Origin: Caecitellus pseudoparvulus
Taxonomy: Eukaryota > Protista > Bigyra: Bicosoecida
DNA: 64,000 bases
Assembly (NCBI GenBank): GCA_965644315.1
Contig: CBFFRQ010000013.1
Coordinates: 124,001 to 188,000, forward strand
Reading direction: 5' to 3'
The translations under genes and the position numbers were made by a program. The notes beneath the pieces were generated by a model that had not been told where the DNA came from, ran no database searches, and was given only the letters and a program-made list of their open reading frames with translations. This document shows positions 1 through 10,931 of this stretch, in pieces (the first letter of the stretch is position 1; every line of letters begins with the position of its first letter).

Positions 1-394
1 GCTGCTGCAGTGCCCCTGCCCAGCACCCGAGGCTTGCTGCCTTCGCCAGCCGGCACCGCCGGCAGCGCCTCGGCGGGCACGCCAGGCAGTGCCGCGTGGC
101 ATGGCCAGGCTGCTTGGAGCAGCCACGTGCCCCCTCATTGGGGCATGCCTGTGCCCCTGCCCCCCGCCCCCGCCATGGTGCTGCCTCCTGGTGCGCTTCC
201 CGGCGCTGTCACCATTCAGCAGCCAGGGCACGGCTCAGCTCACCAGCCCTATGCGGCCCACCAGGGCACACCCTTCCCCCCGCCATCCTGGCTTCAGGTC
301 CCCGGATTGATGCCCTCTCAGCCCAAGCGACCTCGTGTCGAGACGAGCGACGTGCTGGCGGCGGGCGCGCCTGGTCTGCCTGTGCCCCTCCCAG

Positions 395-411
395 GGCCCT
401 GTCCCATTGAG
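395..411 (+). repeat. Left terminal inverted repeat of Harbinger element
   Basis: GGCCCTGTCCCATTGAG, preceded by TSD CAG. A GGAGG at 418-422 is mirrored by CCTCC at 5377-5381. Confidence 0.88.
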
Positions 412-1015
412 TGGTTAGGAGGGGTTCGTTTTTGAGCTTGTCAGGAGGGCATGTTGGCGATAGTTGTATGTGATAATGTACTGAGTATAAAATAACGAAT
501 GCATACATTATTTTTGTCAGAGTGTGCTTGAAAGGTTGGGTCTGTGATGCAAACTGGATGCGGAATTTGCTTGCCCACGTTTGTAAAAGGAGGCTGCTGT
601 CTTATGTTCCAGTCTACTTGCGCGTATTCGTACACTTTCGTGATCCAATGCAAATTTTTATGAAGTGTGGGCCGAATTTCGAGGAATCGGGCCGTTTTGG
701 TGATCACCCTCTTTCGATTCGGGTGAGTTGTCTGTCGATTACGAACAGAGGGCCTGCGTCGTCATCGAGGTGCTCACAAACCCGCATTCGACACCGGCGC
801 AACCAGCACTCCAGCCCCCATGTGTCTTTCACAGTGTCGAACTACCGATCAAACGATCAGCGTCCCAGGGTTGCAATTCACAATTTTCACCTCGAAGGCT
901 TGCACTTCCCGCAAGGCGAGTTTCGCGGAAATCGAAATGAGTCTTGGTTGAGACAGGCCGAACAAGGCACTGTGAGAAAAGACTCCCCGTATTGTCTTGC
1001 ACAGATCATACAACC

Positions 1016-2749
1016 ATGTCTGGCATGCAATTCCTGGTTTCCTTTTTACTGTTGCGCCGGCGGCAGCATGTCCGTAGGTTGCAAGCGCTCCAAGCACTTA
1101 TTGCCACAGAAGCAGCACTGTTGCTGGCAGTGGTAGCAATGGCCGATGAAGATGGACACGAGCAGGCCGTGCCACTACCGTGCTTCGATGAAGACTGTGC
1201 TCTGGAGGAGGGCGTGAGGGCCAGCGCACGTGGCCGCACCAATCCTCTTGCAGGTTTGGCATCCGGTGTGAGGACGTGGGTGGCACGGCAACATGGAGTG
1301 CCTCTCGAAGAGCACGAGGTTTGCACAACCCCACATACGGTGTTGCAGTATACTATGAAGCAGTTGTGCTCTGTTGGTGTGAACACTATTTTAGCTCTAT
1401 CGGTGTGGTTCATGAAATCTTCTGCACCAAAACTCTGGTACAGGTGGGTCATGCATTCGATCCTACCCGTGGAAGTAGAGGCCCACGCTGTGGAGCTTGC
1501 AGGTGATGAACCTGCAGAGGAACCAGACTCACAAGAGCACAGGACCTGGCAGAGACAGCTTCGGCGCCACAGGGAAGACTGTCTGCACGAGCACTGCAGT
1601 CGCCTTGGGGCATGCGAGCGTCCCATGGTGCAGCAACAGCCATCAGTGGCAGACTGGTGGGGTGCTGTGGACTCATCATTCTGCGGCCAAGGATGCACTT
1701 TCAGTTGGCTGGAGGCTTGTTGCCTTGGAGTGCATTATATGTGCAAGGGTTTCAACATGAGAGCTGGACAAGAAGCGTTCACTGGGGCATCGAAGTCCAC
1801 ATGCAGTCGAATCCTAAAGGTTTTCTTGCGGTCTATCTCATCCAGCATGTTTGAACAGCAGGTGTACATGCCAGCACCAGATTCTGGGGAGTGGATGGAG
1901 AGTGTACGATTGAACTTTGCCCTGTCAGGCATGCAGCTGCCGTGCGTAGCAGGCAGCGTGGATGATACACATGTGCGTGCTTACATCAGTGAAGATAGTG
2001 GAAAGGGCGTATACATAAACAAGGATGGCGTGGCTTCGGTTAGTGCCCAGTGCATGGTAAGTGGCCACGGACTCTTCTGGCAAGCAGACATTGGGTATGC
2101 TGGTGCCGAAAGCGATCGGGGGAAGCTCATAAGGTCTCCCATGTTTGCGGCAATGGTCGGGAACCCAAGCTTACGTCCTTGTCCACTCCCATATACATTG
2201 GCAGCAGACTCGGGATTTCGTCCGGGGTACACATTCTTACTTCTTCCGTTCGACCAGCGGGACACTGATGTGGTGCAGCCGAATCATTTGGTGACAATTT
2301 TCCACGATGCACTTTTGCACATTCGAGTTAAGGTAGAATGTGCATTTGGAGAGCTCAAGAACAGGTTCCGCATCTTGAACAACACTGCGAATGGAAACCT
2401 TGGGCCAGCAGCAGTTGCACTGCGTCTACGTGTAGCTGTAGCACTGCATAACTTTGTACTGCGAGCTCTGCCATTGCGGGCATCTGTGTGGCATGCCCTT
2501 GATGTGACAGCGCCGGGGACTGTCTGGGGTGACCTGCTGGAAGAAGCAACGGCAAAGGTGGTAGAGGACTTGCTTGAGGCGCAGCCCCCTTCATGGAGTA
2601 TGCCGAGTGCCATGGGATGGAAGACGCAAGTGCTGGAGCTGGCGCTTGGCCAGCTTCCACCCACACCATCTTCAAGTATGCTGGGGTTCAGTATCGCTCC
2701 ATCATGGTGGGCACTGCCCAGTGGTGCCGCGAGAGAGTTGAAGAGCTAG
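1016..2749 (+). CDS. Harbinger/PIF transposase (DDE_Tnp_4, HARBI1-like); true C-terminus may lie in the shifted frame ending at 2844
   Basis: HTH-like FTGASKSTCSRIL; GSVDDTHV (cf. GAIDGTHI); YINKDG.ASVSAQ; GYAGAESD; LAADSGF; LLLPF; HIRVKVECAFGELKNRFRIL; LHNF. First ATG is at 1016. Confidence 0.92.
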   Translation: MSGMQFLVSFLLLRRRQHVRRLQALQALIATEAALLLAVVAMADEDGHEQAVPLPCFDEDCALEEGVRASARGRTNPLAGLASGVRTWVARQHGVPLEEHEVCTTPHTVLQYTMKQLCSVGVNTILALSVWFMKSSAPKLWYRWVMHSILPVEVEAHAVELAGDEPAEEPDSQEHRTWQRQLRRHREDCLHEHCSRLGACERPMVQQQPSVADWWGAVDSSFCGQGCTFSWLEACCLGVHYMCKGFNMRAGQEAFTGASKSTCSRILKVFLRSISSSMFEQQVYMPAPDSGEWMESVRLNFALSGMQLPCVAGSVDDTHVRAYISEDSGKGVYINKDGVASVSAQCMVSGHGLFWQADIGYAGAESDRGKLIRSPMFAAMVGNPSLRPCPLPYTLAADSGFRPGYTFLLLPFDQRDTDVVQPNHLVTIFHDALLHIRVKVECAFGELKNRFRILNNTANGNLGPAAVALRLRVAVALHNFVLRALPLRASVWHALDVTAPGTVWGDLLEEATAKVVEDLLEAQPPSWSMPSAMGWKTQVLELALGQLPPTPSSSMLGFSIAPSWWALPSGAARELKS

Positions 2750-2864
2750 CCCTTCTGCACCTGCAAGCACCTGAACAGCCTGGGGCTGCCGGCGAAGGTG
2801 ATGAAGGGAGTGACTGGGAAGGTGACTCTGTTGGCAGTCAATAATGCAGTGTGTTGTCTCATGT

Positions 2865-5085
2865 TCATGACTGCATGGGTTGCCCAGCAACACTACGCTT
2901 CTTCAGGGCTGTAACCATTTGAAGTCGGGCGCGTGCGACCTTCAGCTCCTTGTCTGCGTCTGACAGCGGGTGCGGTGGCATGCCACGCAAGGTTGGAGGC
3001 ACACTTCCGCTGTGCAGCTGCTCCAAAACAGTCTGAACCTGCTCTTGCATGCTAAGGTCACCGTCAATGATGCTTAGGTCCAACCACCCCTGCACTCTTG
3101 TAATTACACCTGATATCGCTGCATCTACCGCACGCTCACTATGTGCGGCAGCAGCACCTGGTGCAGGCACCGAAAGCGAAGGTGCGGGCTGCTGCACTTG
3201 CAAGGACTGCTGGAAAAACTGAAGAAGTGAGGCGTCCTGTTGTGCTTGTCGTTCCCGTGCTGCCTCTTCAGCAACCTGTCGTTTCTCCAGCGAATCTGCC
3301 AAACGGGCAACGATGTCACGCATGCCTGCGGCTGGTGGTGACGTGCCAGACCCCAGGCGACCTCCATCCAGGGCTCCAGTTGCTTTTGCAACAGCAGCAA
3401 CACGGCTTCCCGTGCTCGTTCCACTCCCCGCACCTGATAGGTACTCTCCGCCCTGTCGCGGACTTTCAGTGGGCAACGCAGCGGGCCTGCCACTCGCCAA
3501 CAGCGAGGCTACTGTGTGTGATCCTTCAGATCTAGCCTCTGCAAATATCCCGTTGGTGATGTTGCGAGGCACTGAAGACATCGTTGCCTTTGGCCTGGCT
3601 TTGCCTTGGCACACGCTTGCATAATTCATCAGCTCGCCCGGAAGCAGTCCACCGTTCAGGGGTGGATAGCGCAAGTCATCAGTTGGTCCCACAGGCAACC
3701 ACATTTCCTTGTTCGTTACGCTACACCGCAGGCGCTGGAAGCGCAAGCGCGCAGCGGCGCTTGCGTTTCGTGCCCTGCTCCACCCCACCTTCGTGATGTC
3801 CCAACGTGTGTACTTCTTTCCATTTAAATCAAGAGAGGGAGCACCAGGGTGGCTAGGGGCTGTGGGTTCGCTTGCCCCCCCGCTTCCCGTCCTTCTGCCC
3901 TCAGACCCGTTGATGATGTCAACCTGTTTCTTCAACGTTTCGAGGCTGGCCCAAGTACCTGAAGCTGGAACCAGAGCCTCACGAAGGAGGCTTGAAACCA
4001 GGACCAAGCCTGACCACGACAGGAAGGCTTCTTGGGAATCACTACCTGGTGTTGAAACCAACACCATGTACTTTGAGTCGTCTCGCTCCGGCCATGGCCT
4101 TCCTAGCATGTTCGTGTCATGCTCCTCGAAGGCAGTGAGCAGCAACGGCAAGAATTTGTGAGCTAGGCTCTTGCCCACAATGCCACTTCGCATCTTGTTG
4201 CTCCCTTGTGTGGCAAAAGTCCGGAACAGGCTTCTGTCAGAGCCTTCCGGGCATGGCTCACCCGACGAGACAACACGACCCCCAAGAGATGAGTAGTCAA
4301 TGGTACCCTCACGAACACCCAGACGAACGATAGCTCCAGACATTCTCCATGCACTTGCTTTGTTTCCAAAGGCAGCCCAGGTCGACGACGGCATCAAGGT
4401 GGCGAACTCCTTCTTGTCAGGGTGCGTCTGCACCCCATTCTTGGACGGTGTTTGCAACAGAGCTCGATCAGTAGAGGCCCACGGAATTGGGCTCGCTGAG
4501 TCGAGACGCATCAACGCACGGGCAGGGGAAGTGGCAGCTGGTGTCGCGCCGACGGCACCAGCAGCACTCCGTGGTGGGGAAGGGCTGCCAGCTGTCCAGG
4601 ACACACCACCACTCTCCAAGTCAGGACTTGAACTGTCACTCTTGCCCTCATCACCACTCATGTCAACGACCTCGTCTGCGGGCAGAGTCAGGAAGGCGTG
4701 TTTGCGAGAAGCGTTTCGGAGTTTCACACAGCGGAAATGAAAACGAACCGAAAGCTTCCAGTTGTTCCTTAGCGTTTGTCTTCATCCTCCTGGCAATGCT
4801 TGCTGTAAGGGCAGCAATCCGGACTGGTCTGGTAGGCGTTGCGATGGCGGGTGATTCTTGCGCAGCGAGTTCGCTTCCTGGAGGCGTTGCAGGCAGCTCA
4901 AACACCCGTCCTGCTGCCCCGAGCCTCGCGCCCGTCCGCAGTCGGGAAGTCGGTGCGTTACCTTGAAGGAACTGTCGGACCAGTGCATGTGTGTCCGCTT
5001 GCGAGCCTTCAACTGCGGTTCTTTTGCCACTCGTCGGCGCATCTGCCTGAACGCGTGCATTCCGGGGGCGCTTGCGGCCAGACAT
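2865..5085 (-). CDS. Harbinger ORF2, putative DNA-binding partner (Myb/SANT-like position), about 715 aa; exons 5085-4749 and 4675-2865
   Basis: A 73-nt intron GTTCGT...CTGAC...CGCAG (4748-4676) joins the two ORFs in frame (EAF-D-EVVDM). N-terminal basic NLS-like MSGRKRPR; C-terminal coiled coil; lies inside the TIRs, convergent with the transposase. Confidence 0.75.
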
Positions 5086-5387
5086 GGCAGCAAATCATTC
5101 CAAGAGTATGCTCACAACTTACTGTGAATAGTTTAAAAGTAGAGTTTGATATCCATATCTGCACTGCTCGCCATGGTACACAAACCACTGCCAGCAAGTG
5201 GCAAATTCCGCATGCTAATAGGCTCGATAAACAACGCTCTGTTGCACACGACAGAGCGGCCGTTCAAGTCTAACATCCTCTGTTAGTGTCAAGGTGACAA
5301 AACATGCTGCCTGCAGCACTTTTCCGTGAACTTCAAAAAATGCATTCTCGTTTCACAGATTTTCTCGATTCAGAGGCCTCCGCTGGC

Positions 5388-5404
5388 CTCAATGAGACAC
5401 GGCC
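5388..5404 (-). repeat. Right terminal inverted repeat of Harbinger element
   Basis: Reverse complement GGCCGTGTCTCATTGAG, followed by TSD CAG at 5405-5407. Confidence 0.88.
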
Positions 5405-6029
5405 CAGCACAGGCGCCTGTCATCCGAGGCCAAGTGGGTGCGCCCTGTGTGGCCATGCTGGGACACCTGCCCACATCCCTGGGCGCCAAGCCCGGCATGG
5501 CCCGTCTGCCAGAGGGCTGGCAGACCCCCCCCACGCGCATGGGGAGCGGTGCCCACGCTTTCCCCCTCTCCTGGGCCCAGCGACTCCCAGCCAAGTCTCC
5601 CGCCGCGGAGCACCTCGGGGGTAGCAAGCGGGCAAGACCCACTCCCTACCCCCAGTGATCATACCCCCTGGAGCTCTGTGCGAAAGCTGGGGCTGCGCGT
5701 GTCTCCCAGCCTTCAGGCCGGACCACGCGCAGACCAGCGCCAGAGCCTTGTCAACCCGTTTCGCTTCTGTTGTGATGTGATCCCGGTGGGGAGCGCCAGA
5801 GCAGGCACCCCCCACCACCGTGATGTGATACAGAGAGGGGTGCACCTTATTGTGCACCCCCATGCATGTGGGCCGATGTCTACGAACTTCAATGCAATCT
5901 CCCCGCTGCGTGCTTCGTCCGGGAAGCGCGAGAGCCCTGCCGCGCCGTGGCTGCCGCCCGTCAAATCCCAAAACAAGGACACGCCCCGATTCCAGTGCAC
6001 ACTAGTGTGCCTATCTGCCCCTTGCCGTC

Positions 6030-9000
6030 ATGGGGGCGACAGTATCCTCTTCCAAGCCAAGGCGTGGCCAGGAAGCAAGCTCCTCCGTCGCTGCGACGAG
6101 CGCTGCAGAGCACAGCACCCTCTCCTTCGCCAGCTTGCCCAAAGCCCTGGTGCGTGCGCCAACTCCGTGCACTTCACAGCACGCATACGATCCTTTTGCA
6201 CCCCGCCCCCGCGCCTGCATGCAGACCAAGCATGACTTGGACGGCTACGCGGCTGGCCTGCTACAGCTTCCTCCCGCAGCGGCAGCCGCTGAGCCAGAGG
6301 CAGCCCTGGCCGCCCACCTCGTCGGGTGGGGCTCGGGGCAGGTGAATCGCTTCATACTCAGGGTGCAGGGTGCTGTGGCGCACCTCTCTGCCAGCCCCGA
6401 CGCCGACCCCGCTGACTTTTCCACGACAAGTCTGGACAACCAGCACCCCCACCCAGCCCGCGGCCTGCCAGCGTTCAAACTCATCAAGCCCCACCTCGCA
6501 CAGCACATGACGACCACACCTCTACCAGTGCCGCTCTTTCAAGCCCTCATCACCACTCCCCACCGTGACCTGCTGTCCCCTGCAGCTCACGGCGCCCAAG
6601 CCTCCTTCCCGCTGCGCCGCCTGTCGGCAGCTTTTGCTGCCTCTACTCCCTTCTCCAGCGGCTGCGGCGGGCTCCTCCCGCAAGGCACACCCCAAACCAT
6701 TGAACAGGCAGATGCGCTGCATGCTGCGCCCCTCCTCGTCGCCCTCATCGCCACGAGCGCGGCGTCGCCCGGCGACCGCTGGCGCAAGCTGCTGCGCCTC
6801 CTGCCGTCCACCTCTCCGCCTGGCTCACCGCATGCCTGCTCCTGGGCGGCCTTCTCAAACCTAGTGCACCTACTCCTGCATGTCCTGCACGTGCTGCGCC
6901 TGCTGCCGCTGGCGCTGCTGGGCCCACGCCTGGCCCTGCTCAGCGCCCGCCTGCACACCGATGTCCGGAGCCTGCCAGGAGGGGACATGGCCCCCTCCTC
7001 CTCGCCCCGTGCCTCCACCAGCAGGCGCAGCAGTGGGCGCAGTCCACGGGCGACGGTGACGCCCTCTCGACCCATCTCCCCAGGTGGGGCGTGGGGCGCC
7101 CTGCCCAGTCCCGCTGCGCGTGGACACACGCCCAGTTGGGGACGGGACCGCAGCCCGGTTGCGTCCCGCGACCTGTCCGCCTCATCTGACACCGGCGGTG
7201 GAGGCAAGTGGGGACCAGAGCACATCCCCACCGCCACCCTGGGCTCCTGCCTTTCAGCGCACGCCGACGTGGCAGCCCTCCTCCGGGCTGTCGATGCCGT
7301 GCTGGGGCACATTCGCTCTGGCGTCACCACCCGCAGCATCAAGGGTGCCATGACGGCGTACTGCTCCCGCCTGGACACCCTGGGGGCCGAAATCAGCGCA
7401 CATAGACTGCACCAGCGCCTGGATGTGCGGGGGCCGGGGCGTGGCAGCTCCCCCCACGCCGCAGTGTTGGTGTGCCCGTTGACTGCCTCTGACCTGCAGC
7501 GGGAGCTGGGCGGCCGGGCTCCTGCGGAGGGGGGGGCGTCCACTTCGGGCACGCTGGGCGGCATGGGGCACTCTCCCCTGCTGCAGTTCCTGCAGGAGGC
7601 GGCTCAGCCAGGGTCCGCACCACGAGGGGCGGAGGACTTGTACCGGGTCCTGGATGTCACAGCCGAGGGCAGCTACCTGCCCCTGCTTGGGCAAGAGGCG
7701 CCTGTGCCGACCTCTCGGTCTGCCAAGGTCAGTGCCCGGCACCCGGCCTCGACAGGGTGGGTCTCAGGGCTCCGCAAGGCTCACACAGGTGGCTTCAGTG
7801 TCAAGCGTGCTTGGGCGCTAGCACGGGTGCCCTTGCGGGTGCTGCAGGCAGCCAACGCGCTGTTGCAGGGCGCAGTGGCGGGCAGCCTGCGCCGGGACAC
7901 CCTGGCCGCAGCCCTGCCAGGCCAGTTGGAGCAAGTGCATTGTTTGCGTCTGCTCACTCGGTCGGGTGCACCTGGAGCGCCGGTCCTGCCCTCCGGCACG
8001 CTGTCTCTGGCCGCCAGCAAGGCGCAGGCTGCCAAGCACCAGCGCGCGTCTCGAGCCATCGCCGACTCCCCCAACCTCCTGTCCGTCATCGCCAGCGTGG
8101 GGGGCGGCGGACACCGAAGCTCCGCAGTGTCCTTCGCCTCACTGCACTCCGCTGCCACAGCTGCAGAGGGGGTAGGCAGGGGCCCCGGCGGCGCTCACAC
8201 CCGGGACGGCCTGTCCAGCTTGGCCACCAGGGTGGTGGCGTCTTCCTCCTACGCGGGGCAGTCCTGGTTCTCCCCCCTCTCAGTGGTCGCGCACACGGCA
8301 GGCTGCATCCCACGCATATCTGTCAAGGCCGCCCAAGACACATACACGTCAGAGTGGGACCTGAACCAGCAGCTGGGCAAGCCGTGCCCGCCTCCTTCCT
8401 CCATGCACCCCATCAAGCGCATGTTTGCCGTGAGGGACGGTGCGGCGCTGGAACTGGCCAGTCGCAAGCTGCACCGAGCAGCCAGTCGGCGTGCAGCGTC
8501 AGGGGCACGCCTGACGCCCCTGGCTCACGGCAAGCAAGGTGGTCCCGCCCGCTCCCCCTCCCAACACCCCCTGCAAGTCAAGACGTCTGGTCTGTCGGCT
8601 GCCTCCACGACTAGCGACGGTGTGGAGGAGTGGGTCACAGGTCTCTCCAGCGCCGCCAGCACGCCCCTCAGGCGCATCGGCTCCACACTGCCCCGCCTAC
8701 TCAGCCGCACCGGCAGCATGTCCCCCTCCAGCGTGGCTTTTCGACCACCGCCCGTGGACACCAGTGTTGGGCAACGCACTCCTGCTGCCGGCACCGGCAG
8801 TGCCGTGCTGGGTCCTGGCTTTGTTGACGGCAATGTCTCGGGCGATGACTCCGAGTCCGACGACGGCAACGCAGCAGAGAGCACAGGTGGCGCGAGCGCC
8901 AACCCGGCCCCACGCAGCCTTGCTGGTTGGCGCACCGTCATGCGCAAGTTCCCTCGCCTCATCCACATCATGACACAGCTGTCAGCTGTGCAGCTGCTGG

Positions 9001-10931
9001 CCGAACGCTCCGCGGCGCAGGAGGCTCTAAAGGCCCGCAGCGCCCTGCGAGCAGAGGCACTGGAGGGGCGCCGACGAGCACAGGGGGCAAGCCTGCGCCC
9101 CAGCTCCCCTCTCCGCGCCAGCCAAGTGGCAGGCATGCATCGCCACGTGGAGGCAGGGGTGCGGCAGACCCTGGCCAAGGCGGCCGCGTCAGCTTCCCCC
9201 GGCAAGCTCCACCGGCGCCGGCATGTGCGCCCCGCCGTGTCCACGGGGGACTTGAACCCGGGAGTGCGTCGGGCACTGGCCAGTGTCGCACCCGCCACGC
9301 TGTCCACCTCCACGCTGCCAGCACCCTCTGCCCCTGACCGCGTGGCAGCTGCATCCCCGGCAAAGGCGTCCCCACACAAGGGCAGTGTGCGGCAGGGCGT
9401 GCAGGCGTTCTTGCCACATGTGGCTGGCATTGCGGCGCAGGGCTCGTCTGCTTCGCGCCGCCAGCGCCGTCGGAGCAGGAGCAAGCAAGCGCACAGCGTG
9501 TCTTCCCGCCTGCTGCAAGGCACCCTGGCGCCTGGACTGAGCAGTGGAGCAGTGTGCACGCGTGCCGGCACGCGCTTCGTGGTGCGGGAAGGCGAGGGGG
9601 GCGGCTCTGACGCGCGTCTGCAGCGGCCTGACGGCAGCCAGCTGTCAGTGGAGGAGTTGCTGGCCATCGCGTCGGATGACTCGGACGATGCGGCGGCGCA
9701 GGCGCTGGGTGTGGGCGAGGAGGACGACGGCAGCGGTGATGAGGCCGGGCAGGGACTGGTGTCCAGCGTCAACCTGCGCGCGCTGCTGGCGCGTGAGCTG
9801 GCCCAGGCTGCTCCAGCTGCGCCGCTGTCTCAGGACACTGTGGACGCCTTCCAGGCGTGGTATGCCAGTGGGCAGGCGGGTCCTATCGACGGGACTTCCC
9901 CGGCCCACGCCGCCACACAGGCGTACCCTGTGGACCCCGAGGCGTCACCGCAGGTGATGAAGTGTGCACTGGTCGGCTTCCTCCGCCACCAGCGCCGGCG
10001 AAAGCAGCTGCAGACGAAGCGGAGAGTGCTAACGAAACTGAGCTCTTTCTCGGCCCTACTGGCACCGTCAGCGGCCCGTGCGGCCCGGGCCTCCCCTGAC
10101 AAGATCCAGACTGCCGACGTTGACGCGGATGGGGGAGCTCCACCCTCCCCACATCTTCCCCAGACGACGGATGGCCCTCCTCCCAAGCGCGACAAACGAA
10201 GCCGCCGGCAGCCCATGCGTGCGGCGCAGCCGATGCCCCGAACCCGCCTGATGCAGCAGCTCAAGTCTGCCGCAGGCACGTACTGCCAGTCCGGCGAGAA
10301 GCTGTCCGTCTCCTTTGAGCAGAGCGGCGGCAGCGAGGACATATCTGGGGGCATGCTGCCTGTGGCGTCTGCCCAGGCCTTCGTGGCTGCCGCGGACGCC
10401 CGGCGAAGTGGCCAAGGCGCCGCTGCGGGAGGGCCGCCTCCGTCTCCCAAGACGCCCAAGACACCCAAGCCTGACCCTTCCTGGTCCACCCCTGGTCCGG
10501 CGTCACACTTCAAGTCCCCCTTCACAGGTCTGCGAGATGGCCCGTCAGGCAGAGGGCGGGAAGACACCTTCAGCGTGTCGTCCTCCTCTGCCTCAGACAC
10601 GACCTCCAGCGCCACGCCCAGCCAGGACACTGGGGGCATGTCCATCGCCGCTCAGCCCGCAGCCCGGGGCAGTGTCGCCTCCCCCACTCCCATCGCATCC
10701 ATGGCCGCCTTTCTGCAGCGGGTGCACGGCAGTGACAGCCCTGACATGGGCACCTTGCTCAGTGCATTCGACTTGGACGGGCCTGTGGAGGCTGCGGACA
10801 CGCCGCCCCCTGCCCGCCCTCTGCCGCCCGTGTCACCCACGCCGGCCTCTGGCACCCCCAGCCAAGTAGCGGCAGTGCGCCGCATGCTGCAAGCCTCCCG
10901 CGATCGACGGCACCTCGCCGCCACCTTGTGA
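6030..10931 (+). CDS. Large low-complexity hypothetical protein, possible N-myristoylation; likely in-frame intron 6150-6224
   Basis: 1633-codon ORF starting MGATVSS (MGxxxS); GTGCGT...GCAG 75-nt intron; Ala/Ser/Pro-rich; no domain recognised. Confidence 0.7.
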   Translation: MGATVSSSKPRRGQEASSSVAATSAAEHSTLSFASLPKALVRAPTPCTSQHAYDPFAPRPRACMQTKHDLDGYAAGLLQLPPAAAAAEPEAALAAHLVGWGSGQVNRFILRVQGAVAHLSASPDADPADFSTTSLDNQHPHPARGLPAFKLIKPHLAQHMTTTPLPVPLFQALITTPHRDLLSPAAHGAQASFPLRRLSAAFAASTPFSSGCGGLLPQGTPQTIEQADALHAAPLLVALIATSAASPGDRWRKLLRLLPSTSPPGSPHACSWAAFSNLVHLLLHVLHVLRLLPLALLGPRLALLSARLHTDVRSLPGGDMAPSSSPRASTSRRSSGRSPRATVTPSRPISPGGAWGALPSPAARGHTPSWGRDRSPVASRDLSASSDTGGGGKWGPEHIPTATLGSCLSAHADVAALLRAVDAVLGHIRSGVTTRSIKGAMTAYCSRLDTLGAEISAHRLHQRLDVRGPGRGSSPHAAVLVCPLTASDLQRELGGRAPAEGGASTSGTLGGMGHSPLLQFLQEAAQPGSAPRGAEDLYRVLDVTAEGSYLPLLGQEAPVPTSRSAKVSARHPASTGWVSGLRKAHTGGFSVKRAWALARVPLRVLQAANALLQGAVAGSLRRDTLAAALPGQLEQVHCLRLLTRSGAPGAPVLPSGTLSLAASKAQAAKHQRASRAIADSPNLLSVIASVGGGGHRSSAVSFASLHSAATAAEGVGRGPGGAHTRDGLSSLATRVVASSSYAGQSWFSPLSVVAHTAGCIPRISVKAAQDTYTSEWDLNQQLGKPCPPPSSMHPIKRMFAVRDGAALELASRKLHRAASRRAASGARLTPLAHGKQGGPARSPSQHPLQVKTSGLSAASTTSDGVEEWVTGLSSAASTPLRRIGSTLPRLLSRTGSMSPSSVAFRPPPVDTSVGQRTPAAGTGSAVLGPGFVDGNVSGDDSESDDGNAAESTGGASANPAPRSLAGWRTVMRKFPRLIHIMTQLSAVQLLAERSAAQEALKARSALRAEALEGRRRAQGASLRPSSPLRASQVAGMHRHVEAGVRQTLAKAAASASPGKLHRRRHVRPAVSTGDLNPGVRRALASVAPATLSTSTLPAPSAPDRVAAASPAKASPHKGSVRQGVQAFLPHVAGIAAQGSSASRRQRRRSRSKQAHSVSSRLLQGTLAPGLSSGAVCTRAGTRFVVREGEGGGSDARLQRPDGSQLSVEELLAIASDDSDDAAAQALGVGEEDDGSGDEAGQGLVSSVNLRALLARELAQAAPAAPLSQDTVDAFQAWYASGQAGPIDGTSPAHAATQAYPVDPEASPQVMKCALVGFLRHQRRRKQLQTKRRVLTKLSSFSALLAPSAARAARASPDKIQTADVDADGGAPPSPHLPQTTDGPPPKRDKRSRRQPMRAAQPMPRTRLMQQLKSAAGTYCQSGEKLSVSFEQSGGSEDISGGMLPVASAQAFVAAADARRSGQGAAAGGPPPSPKTPKTPKPDPSWSTPGPASHFKSPFTGLRDGPSGRGREDTFSVSSSSASDTTSSATPSQDTGGMSIAAQPAARGSVASPTPIASMAAFLQRVHGSDSPDMGTLLSAFDLDGPVEAADTPPPARPLPPVSPTPASGTPSQVAAVRRMLQASRDRRHLAATL

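Follow-up and report, generated by a model that had tools for sequence, protein, structure and literature searches.

The PIF/Harbinger-IS5 (PHIS) superfamily of DNA transposons was split by Han et al. (2015) according to the type of target-site duplication (TSD), with TWA marking PIF/Harbinger proper and CWG marking NuwaI (PMC4482050). NuwaI, which includes zebrafish HARBINGER3_DR, has ends starting with GG(G), a size of ~4.5 kb and two open reading frames (ORFs); 16 animal genomes contained it, whereas the screen of 121 protists gave none, and several of its families are listed without an annotated partner domain (PMC4482050). The Harbinger partner protein binds both the transposase and the element ends, and is responsible for nuclear import of the transposase (PMC9179366). 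Here, a 5010-bp element is described from the protist Caecitellus pseudoparvulus. It lies in a stretch of 64,000 nt (the window), positions 124,001 to 188,000 of contig CBFFRQ010000013.1 in assembly GCA_965644315.1. The element encodes a DDE_Tnp_4 enzyme, has exact ends and a 3-bp CWG duplication, and has moved recently. With a probability of roughly 0.88, it represents an autonomous cut-and-paste PHIS family that was recently amplified, in which the transposase cuts at 17-nt ends, insertion takes place at CWG and the second gene would act as a helper. Window coordinates are used throughout, and the assembly searched is the window's own 30.6-Mb genome.

Element ends, empty site and copies

The first-pass annotation had described a Harbinger transposon with 15/17-nt terminal inverted repeats (TIRs), an exact CAG TSD and two long ORFs in convergent orientation. 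All three were found again; the + strand ORF occupies 944/1016-2749 and the - strand ORF 2865-4727, and the outer features are:

395..5404, + strand: whole element, 5010 bp (based on 16 full-length copies and the empty site)
392..394, no strand: left TSD copy, CAG (a single CAG is present at the metagenome empty site)
5405..5407, no strand: right TSD copy, CAG (from the sequence and the empty site)
395..411, + strand: left TIR, 17 nt
5388..5404, - strand: right TIR, 17 nt

In an inverted-pair search, the TIR arms are complementary at 15 of 17 bases, or over 18 nt at 89% with the adjoining duplicated base. Since the region holds 133 inverted pairs of comparable quality, this match by itself is not beyond chance, and the proof of the ends lies in the other copies and in an empty site. 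The latter was seen when public sequencing runs were compared with window positions 1-6000. A 2294-nt contig of marine metagenome X5 matches window positions 1-389 and 5403-6000 without any difference. The 5013 bases that it skips correspond to the 5010-bp element plus one 3-bp TSD copy, which fixes the ends to the base. Because its flanks are perfect and the element is absent from it, the insertion is recent and polymorphic in nature: a wild population carries the identical host haplotype without the window insertion.

A DNA search followed by re-alignment gave 16 full-length copies in the genome, with 0 substitutions among them; the sole difference is one extra base in two copies (L011 and L016). 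The last (right-end) base is the same in all 16, and the first base in 11, the remaining five starting 6-10 bases short at the start of a contig. The other genomic copies thus stop at the boundaries of the window copy. Perfect 3-bp TSDs were found in all six copies with both flanks (CTG in four, CAG in two). The right flanks are all different among the 16 copies and read CWG in 13 and CGG or CCG in three, these three being at contig ends with the left flank absent. No flank among the 16 reads TWA. The possibility of a 5-bp duplication (CCCAG) at the window site was ruled out, as the other copies share 3 bases only.

Elsewhere in the genome, the end sequence occurs in one truncated copy and at one single-mismatch site without other similarity. 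The truncated copy, which has the same end and is flanked by CAG, is 98.7% identical; identity is 99.4% for a fragment and 84% for a decayed relic (L019) with a stop and indels. Based on this range, the lineage has been resident for some time. Copies that are 1-5% diverged were found in X5 and in a second organism (X7), one of them at a different site with a CTG flank. As these wild copies are diverged and those of the sequenced strain identical, the exact variant in the strain has multiplied very recently. The earlier suggestion of a young, possibly active element is strongly supported by the lack of substitutions among 16 copies and by the wild marine sample, in which identical flanks surround an empty site. 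The element is exactly bounded and very young, and is probably still active.

Some further observations concern the copies. Ten of them (L001, L006-L008 and L011-L016, on contigs 76, 43, 38, 18, 45, 178, 90, 88, 79 and 3) lie at contig ends, always with the left element end at the terminus and a unique right flank and never the reverse (two-sided p ~0.002 under random orientation). This pattern is probably an assembler rule; other transposon families were also found ~1 kb from contig starts. In X5, a wild copy that is ~5% diverged is cut at window position 933 and runs straight into CCCTAA telomere-type repeats, which suggests either a chromosome end healed inside an element copy or a chimeric contig. 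Run X12 (organism C, from the same study as the source) has two 200-nt contigs with a depth of ~4 that are 100% identical to the element at 2319-2519 and 4576-4785; these may reflect cross-contamination or a shared element.

Transposase gene

Two relatives of the transposase were found, namely P0001, a Tara Oceans protein (50% identical), and the transposase of the ENA metagenome contig L171 (61% identical). The features of the gene are:

1016..2749, + strand: transposase frame as assembled, 577 amino acids (aa), in an ORF from 944; the conserved frame is lost past the C run
1712..1840, + strand: conserved stretch ahead of the DDE core, including EAFTGASKST, with many columns invariant in comparison with the two relatives
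1961..1963, + strand: catalytic D316 (DDTH), within the DDE_Tnp_4 match, invariant in the two relatives
2207..2209, + strand: catalytic D398 (DSGF), invariant in the two relatives
2336..2338, + strand: catalytic E441 (VECAFGELK), invariant in the two relatives
2585..2589, + strand: five consecutive C, where the frame breaks; six C in copies L011 and L016
2590..2844, + strand: conserved C-terminal 84 codons and stop, out of frame in the window copy; as translated from the six-C copies, it can be aligned with P0001 and L171

The protein matches Pfam DDE_Tnp_4 with E = 8.1e-13 and 48.7 bits (cut-off 24.8) over profile positions 2-158 of 158, whereas a match to Plant_tran is barely over its cut-off (23.2 bits vs 22). 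Both the DDE residues noted before and the expected DDE_Tnp_4 hit are thus present. The stretch at 1712-1840 has no Pfam match and sits where Harbinger transposases presumably have their helix-turn-helix. The 203 codons preceding the conserved core are without a relative. A 609-aa protein starting at 1016 is nevertheless likely, because just 0.00025 of Markov shuffles keep the frame 944-1624 open and its guanine-plus-cytosine (GC) pattern by codon position is that of the core; alternatively, translation could conceivably begin at 1625, giving 406 aa. In comparison with the 1-5% diverged wild copies, 13 of 16 transposase differences fall at third codon positions (p = 1e-4). An AlphaFold model built on a three-sequence alignment had a predicted local distance difference test (pLDDT) score of 35, too poor for a fold search, and solved structures searched by sequence gave no match for either protein of the element.

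The frame of the window copy stops at 2749 in unconserved sequence. Thirteen other copies share its five C, while L011 (contig 45) and L016 (contig 3), otherwise identical, have six. In these two, the frame runs on to 2844 and encodes the 609 aa, and the alignment of the 84 residues gained with both relatives extends to the end and contains 11 invariant columns. All four of the listed wild-copy differences past the C run are third positions of the post-run frame; three of the four fall within the assembled frame, as second positions there. This gives independent support for the six-C frame. In X5 and X7, the wild contigs have one additional base at some point within 2523-3218, which would fit six C. 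A short intron near 2557-2583 was considered as the cause of the frame change, but the natural six-C copies explain it better. The first-pass annotation is thus corrected in one point: as assembled, the transposase frame of the window copy is broken at 2585-2589.

Second gene

On the opposite strand, a spliced gene converges on the transposase gene:

4749..5085, - strand: exon 1, 112 codons plus 1 base, ATG at 5085, with a basic RKRPR stretch at the start
4676..4748, - strand: predicted GT..AG intron, 73 nt, read from the sequence
2865..4675, - strand: exon 2, 602 codons plus stop, part of the ORF 2865-4727
2907..3188, - strand: C-terminal helical region, the sole part with a detectable relative (P0002); helices with pLDDT 55-84

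The two exons are in frame across the intron and would give 715 codons in all. The intron is supported by its faster divergence in relic L019, with 20 substitutions in ~76 nt, compared to 12.6% in exon 2 and 14% in exon 1. The RKRPR stretch looks like a nuclear localisation signal. Of the listed differences to wild copies in this gene, 15 of 23 are at third codon positions (p = 0.002), indicating purifying selection.

A Myb/SANT partner had been expected here, but none was detected: the second protein, whole or in pieces, gave no match to Myb, SANT or MADF, nor to any Pfam family, at E up to 10. The exons were searched separately, not joined. Myb/SANT-type partner domains are known to be very divergent (PMC9179366). 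A word-based protein search returned no relative, and a protein atlas gave no usable match for the whole protein or for residues 60-390. The AlphaFold model (pLDDT 41) was too poor for a fold search; its C-terminal helices are moderately to fairly confident, and much of the protein is predicted to be disordered. An exhaustive HMMER search of 1.84 billion representative proteins yielded one match, P0002 (E = 3.3e-4, residues 496-589), and no paralogue was found in the genome outside the element copies and relics. Judged by sequence, the second protein is an orphan, whose only likeness to another protein is that of its tail to one metagenomic relative.

Metagenomic relatives

On L171 and L172, P0002 forms the final part of an open frame that is convergent to the 61%-identical transposase; in L171, the second-protein tail is 35% identical. 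This convergent pair indicates that the two-gene unit is conserved, with the helical tail as its conserved part. In L171 and P0001, similarity to the transposase extends through the C-terminal tail. L171 differs from the element in its transposase frame of ~440 aa, which lacks the ~200-aa N-terminal extension, and in being GC-richer (0.62-0.70), and no ends matching the TIRs of the element were found in it. Next to its transposase, L171:2400-3872 has a GC content of 0.72-0.76 and long open frames, which suggests that this relative is also resident in a GC-rich eukaryote.

The word-based protein search gave a single match for the element's transposase and none for that of L171, not even itself. 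A search by protein pattern found no related loci in metagenome and viral collections. The end-sequence pattern matched 102 metagenome stretches, which were put down to chance, as the fetched ones share nothing else with the element.

Composition and host site

As stated in the first-pass annotation, the element is lower in GC than its host: 0.548 (0.50-0.59 along its length) against 0.59-0.73 in the rest of the window, the mean of which is 0.644 with the element included. The adjoining host DNA (5.3-12 kb) has a GC content of 0.62-0.73, and third codon positions have 0.55 in the element and 0.75 in the flanking long open frame. When the element is removed, a frame from base 10 runs in frame beyond 5408 to a stop at 5658, with codon-position GC values of 0.72, 0.62 and 0.75, which is the host pattern. 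It is plausible that the insertion lies inside a host open frame or exon that is uninterrupted in the wild population; further frames are also open across the insertion site, and no Pfam family was found in the host flanks. Adjoining the element, window positions 6030-10931 hold a 1633-codon open frame rich in Ala, Ser and Pro, also without a Pfam family.

Proposed mechanism

The DDE_Tnp_4 transposase would cut the element at its 17-nt inverted ends and insert it at C-W-G, where a staggered cut would duplicate these 3 bases. The second gene (~715 aa, one intron) is probably the helper required by Harbinger-type elements, a reading that draws on the partner-protein role described in PMC9179366. 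Its product might carry the transposase into the nucleus by means of the basic N-terminus and bind the element ends, with a subterminal inverted motif as the candidate site. The five-C copies would be either assembly errors or dependent on the two six-C copies. The non-coding ends and the motif are located as follows:

412..1015, + strand: left non-coding end, GC 0.49, presumed transposase promoter and 5' untranslated region (UTR)
5086..5387, - strand: right non-coding end, GC 0.46, presumed second-gene promoter and 5' UTR
558..570, + strand: 13-nt subterminal motif, candidate protein-binding site
5201..5213, - strand: inverted partner of the 13-nt motif

The motif occurs twice in the element and no more, once per non-coding end and in inverted orientation. 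A shared word of this length was found in 4 of 1000 shuffles.

Alternative explanations

Several alternatives concern the assembly and the origin of the element. It is highly improbable that the copy number and perfect identity are artefacts, created by duplication of contig-end repeats and by consensus polishing in a family that is in fact older and less active. Such an origin would agree with the position of 10 of the 16 copies at contig ends, left end always at the terminus, and with the other transposon families at contig starts. However, all 16 right flanks differ, six copies are fully embedded with proper TSDs and the empty site in the wild sample marks a real, recent insertion; in X3, another sample of the same organism, the summed contig depth over the element, which is not a copy number, is ~30-100x that of the flanks. 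A closer call is whether the 14 five-C copies are truly frameshifted and non-autonomous, with the two six-C copies mobilising them in trans or with slippage at the C run restoring their frame, to which slightly less than even odds are given. The copies are equal in all but this base, the transposase tail is kept in relatives that are just 50-61% identical, and the extra base in the X5 and X7 wild copies is consistent with six C. On the other hand, that base is placed only to within 2523-3218, and the same organism's other run loses single bases at homopolymers (429, 3875, 4215, 4279 and 5335), making five versus six C a typical error of this type of data. A real five-C state, with 14 trans-dependent and 2 autonomous copies, and an assembly error are thus two options that are about equally likely. 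A recent horizontal arrival, with the low GC as the signature of a donor, was raised in the first-pass annotation and is unlikely. The GC contrast (0.55 against a window mean of 0.64, and 0.55 against 0.75 at third positions), the very recent burst and the copies that are 96-99% identical in the second organism and in marine metagenomes would all suit it. Transposons, however, are often AT-richer than host genes, so the low GC is no evidence of transfer. The relics in the same genome, 84-99% identical and including the 98.7% copy with the same end and CAG flank, argue against a very recent arrival, and vertical inheritance may also account for the X7 (organism B) copies.

With regard to the second ORF, a passenger role, as a host gene that was captured or a frame that is open by chance, is quite improbable in place of that of a transposition helper. 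No domain, Myb/SANT or other, was detected in its product even with E values of up to 10; the product also has no relatives by word search or protein atlas, and much of it is disordered by prediction, all of which would fit a passenger. Against this, the third-position bias points to purifying selection on the frame, the genome holds no paralogue beyond the element copies and relics, and the tail is kept in the same convergent position beside a transposase that is just 61% identical; moreover, two genes are the rule in the PHIS superfamily (PMC4482050). The preferred reading, an autonomous and recently amplified PHIS family with a helper gene, has its own weak points. The transposase is frameshifted as assembled in 14 of 16 copies, and the helper role is assigned to a protein that offers neither a domain nor a usable fold (pLDDT 41). 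The intron, the start codons and the expression of both genes are unproven predictions from DNA. No miniature inverted-repeat transposable element (MITE) derivatives with the element's ends were found in the genome by end-sequence search. Lastly, long-read polishing is able to homogenise repeats, and the zero substitutions may therefore overstate the identity of the copies.

Significance

To our knowledge, it is uncommon for a naturally active DNA transposon to have intact genes, exact ends and a documented empty site all at once. If the proposed reading is true, the element would be a naturally active one that is usable as a transposon tool in a marine flagellate, and in a culturable marine protist it could serve for mutagenesis or gene delivery. 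It also documents that the genome is still changing, as seen between a cultured strain and populations in the wild, and would add a host outside the animals to those of CWG-targeting Harbinger-type elements. With a partner protein that has no recognisable DNA-binding domain, it offers a way to test what the second gene of Harbinger elements necessarily contributes.

Comparison with known systems

As far as these searches reach, the element is a new family within a known superfamily. The earlier proposal that it might be undescribed agrees with this, as the nearest transposases (61% and 50%) are both metagenomic and the second protein is an orphan. The genome contains at least 4 other DDE_Tnp_4 lineages, with 41 loci in all. 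Other Harbinger-like families of the same host score 26-32 bits on DDE_Tnp_4 compared to 52 for the element, and neither element protein detects them in the genome at E <= 0.01. Two single DDE_Tnp_4 loci, C78:427616-428041 and C13:571551-571919, score 84 and 76 bits, above any multi-copy family; the latter is on the window's contig, ~447 kb downstream. These two could represent further Harbinger families or HARBI1-like genes that have been domesticated.

Placement in PHIS is based on a DDE_Tnp_4 match above threshold, the invariant D/D/E residues, and TIRs with a fixed 3-bp TSD. ISL2EU elements have a 2-bp TSD and a YqaJ-type partner, whereas here the TSD is 3 bp and no YqaJ match was found. 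The element ends begin with GGCC, presumably as in PIF and mPing. With canonical PIF/Harbinger elements (plant PIF, Pong/mPing), it has in common DDE_Tnp_4 and Plant_tran, two genes and a 3-bp TSD. Strict PIF/Harbinger elements have a TWA TSD and a Myb/SANT partner (PMC4482050), neither of which was found here, the TSD being CTG or CAG.

By the TSD criterion alone, the element fits a NuwaI-like rather than a strict PIF/Harbinger assignment. The 3-bp CWG TSD, DDE_Tnp_4, the two ORFs and the short inverted ends starting with GG are shared with NuwaI. In size, the two are close, with inverted ends of 12-61 bp in NuwaI and 17 bp here, and a length of ~4.5 kb compared to 5.0 kb. NuwaI transposases have 292-564 aa, against 609 aa here, and NuwaI partners have 171-276 aa with Myb_DNA-bind_5 or Myb_DNA-bind_4, against a predicted spliced partner of ~715 aa without a Myb match. 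Furthermore, NuwaI hosts are animals only, whereas the host here is a protist, and CGG or CCG is seen in 3 of 16 right flanks. Tentatively, the element might be the first non-animal member of the CWG-targeting (NuwaI-like) lineage, or else an independent protist lineage that converged on CWG, with an obligatory helper that would be a non-Myb/SANT protein of ~715 aa made up of a basic nuclear-import N-terminus, an unassigned middle and a conserved helical tail, in place of the short Myb partner of NuwaI.

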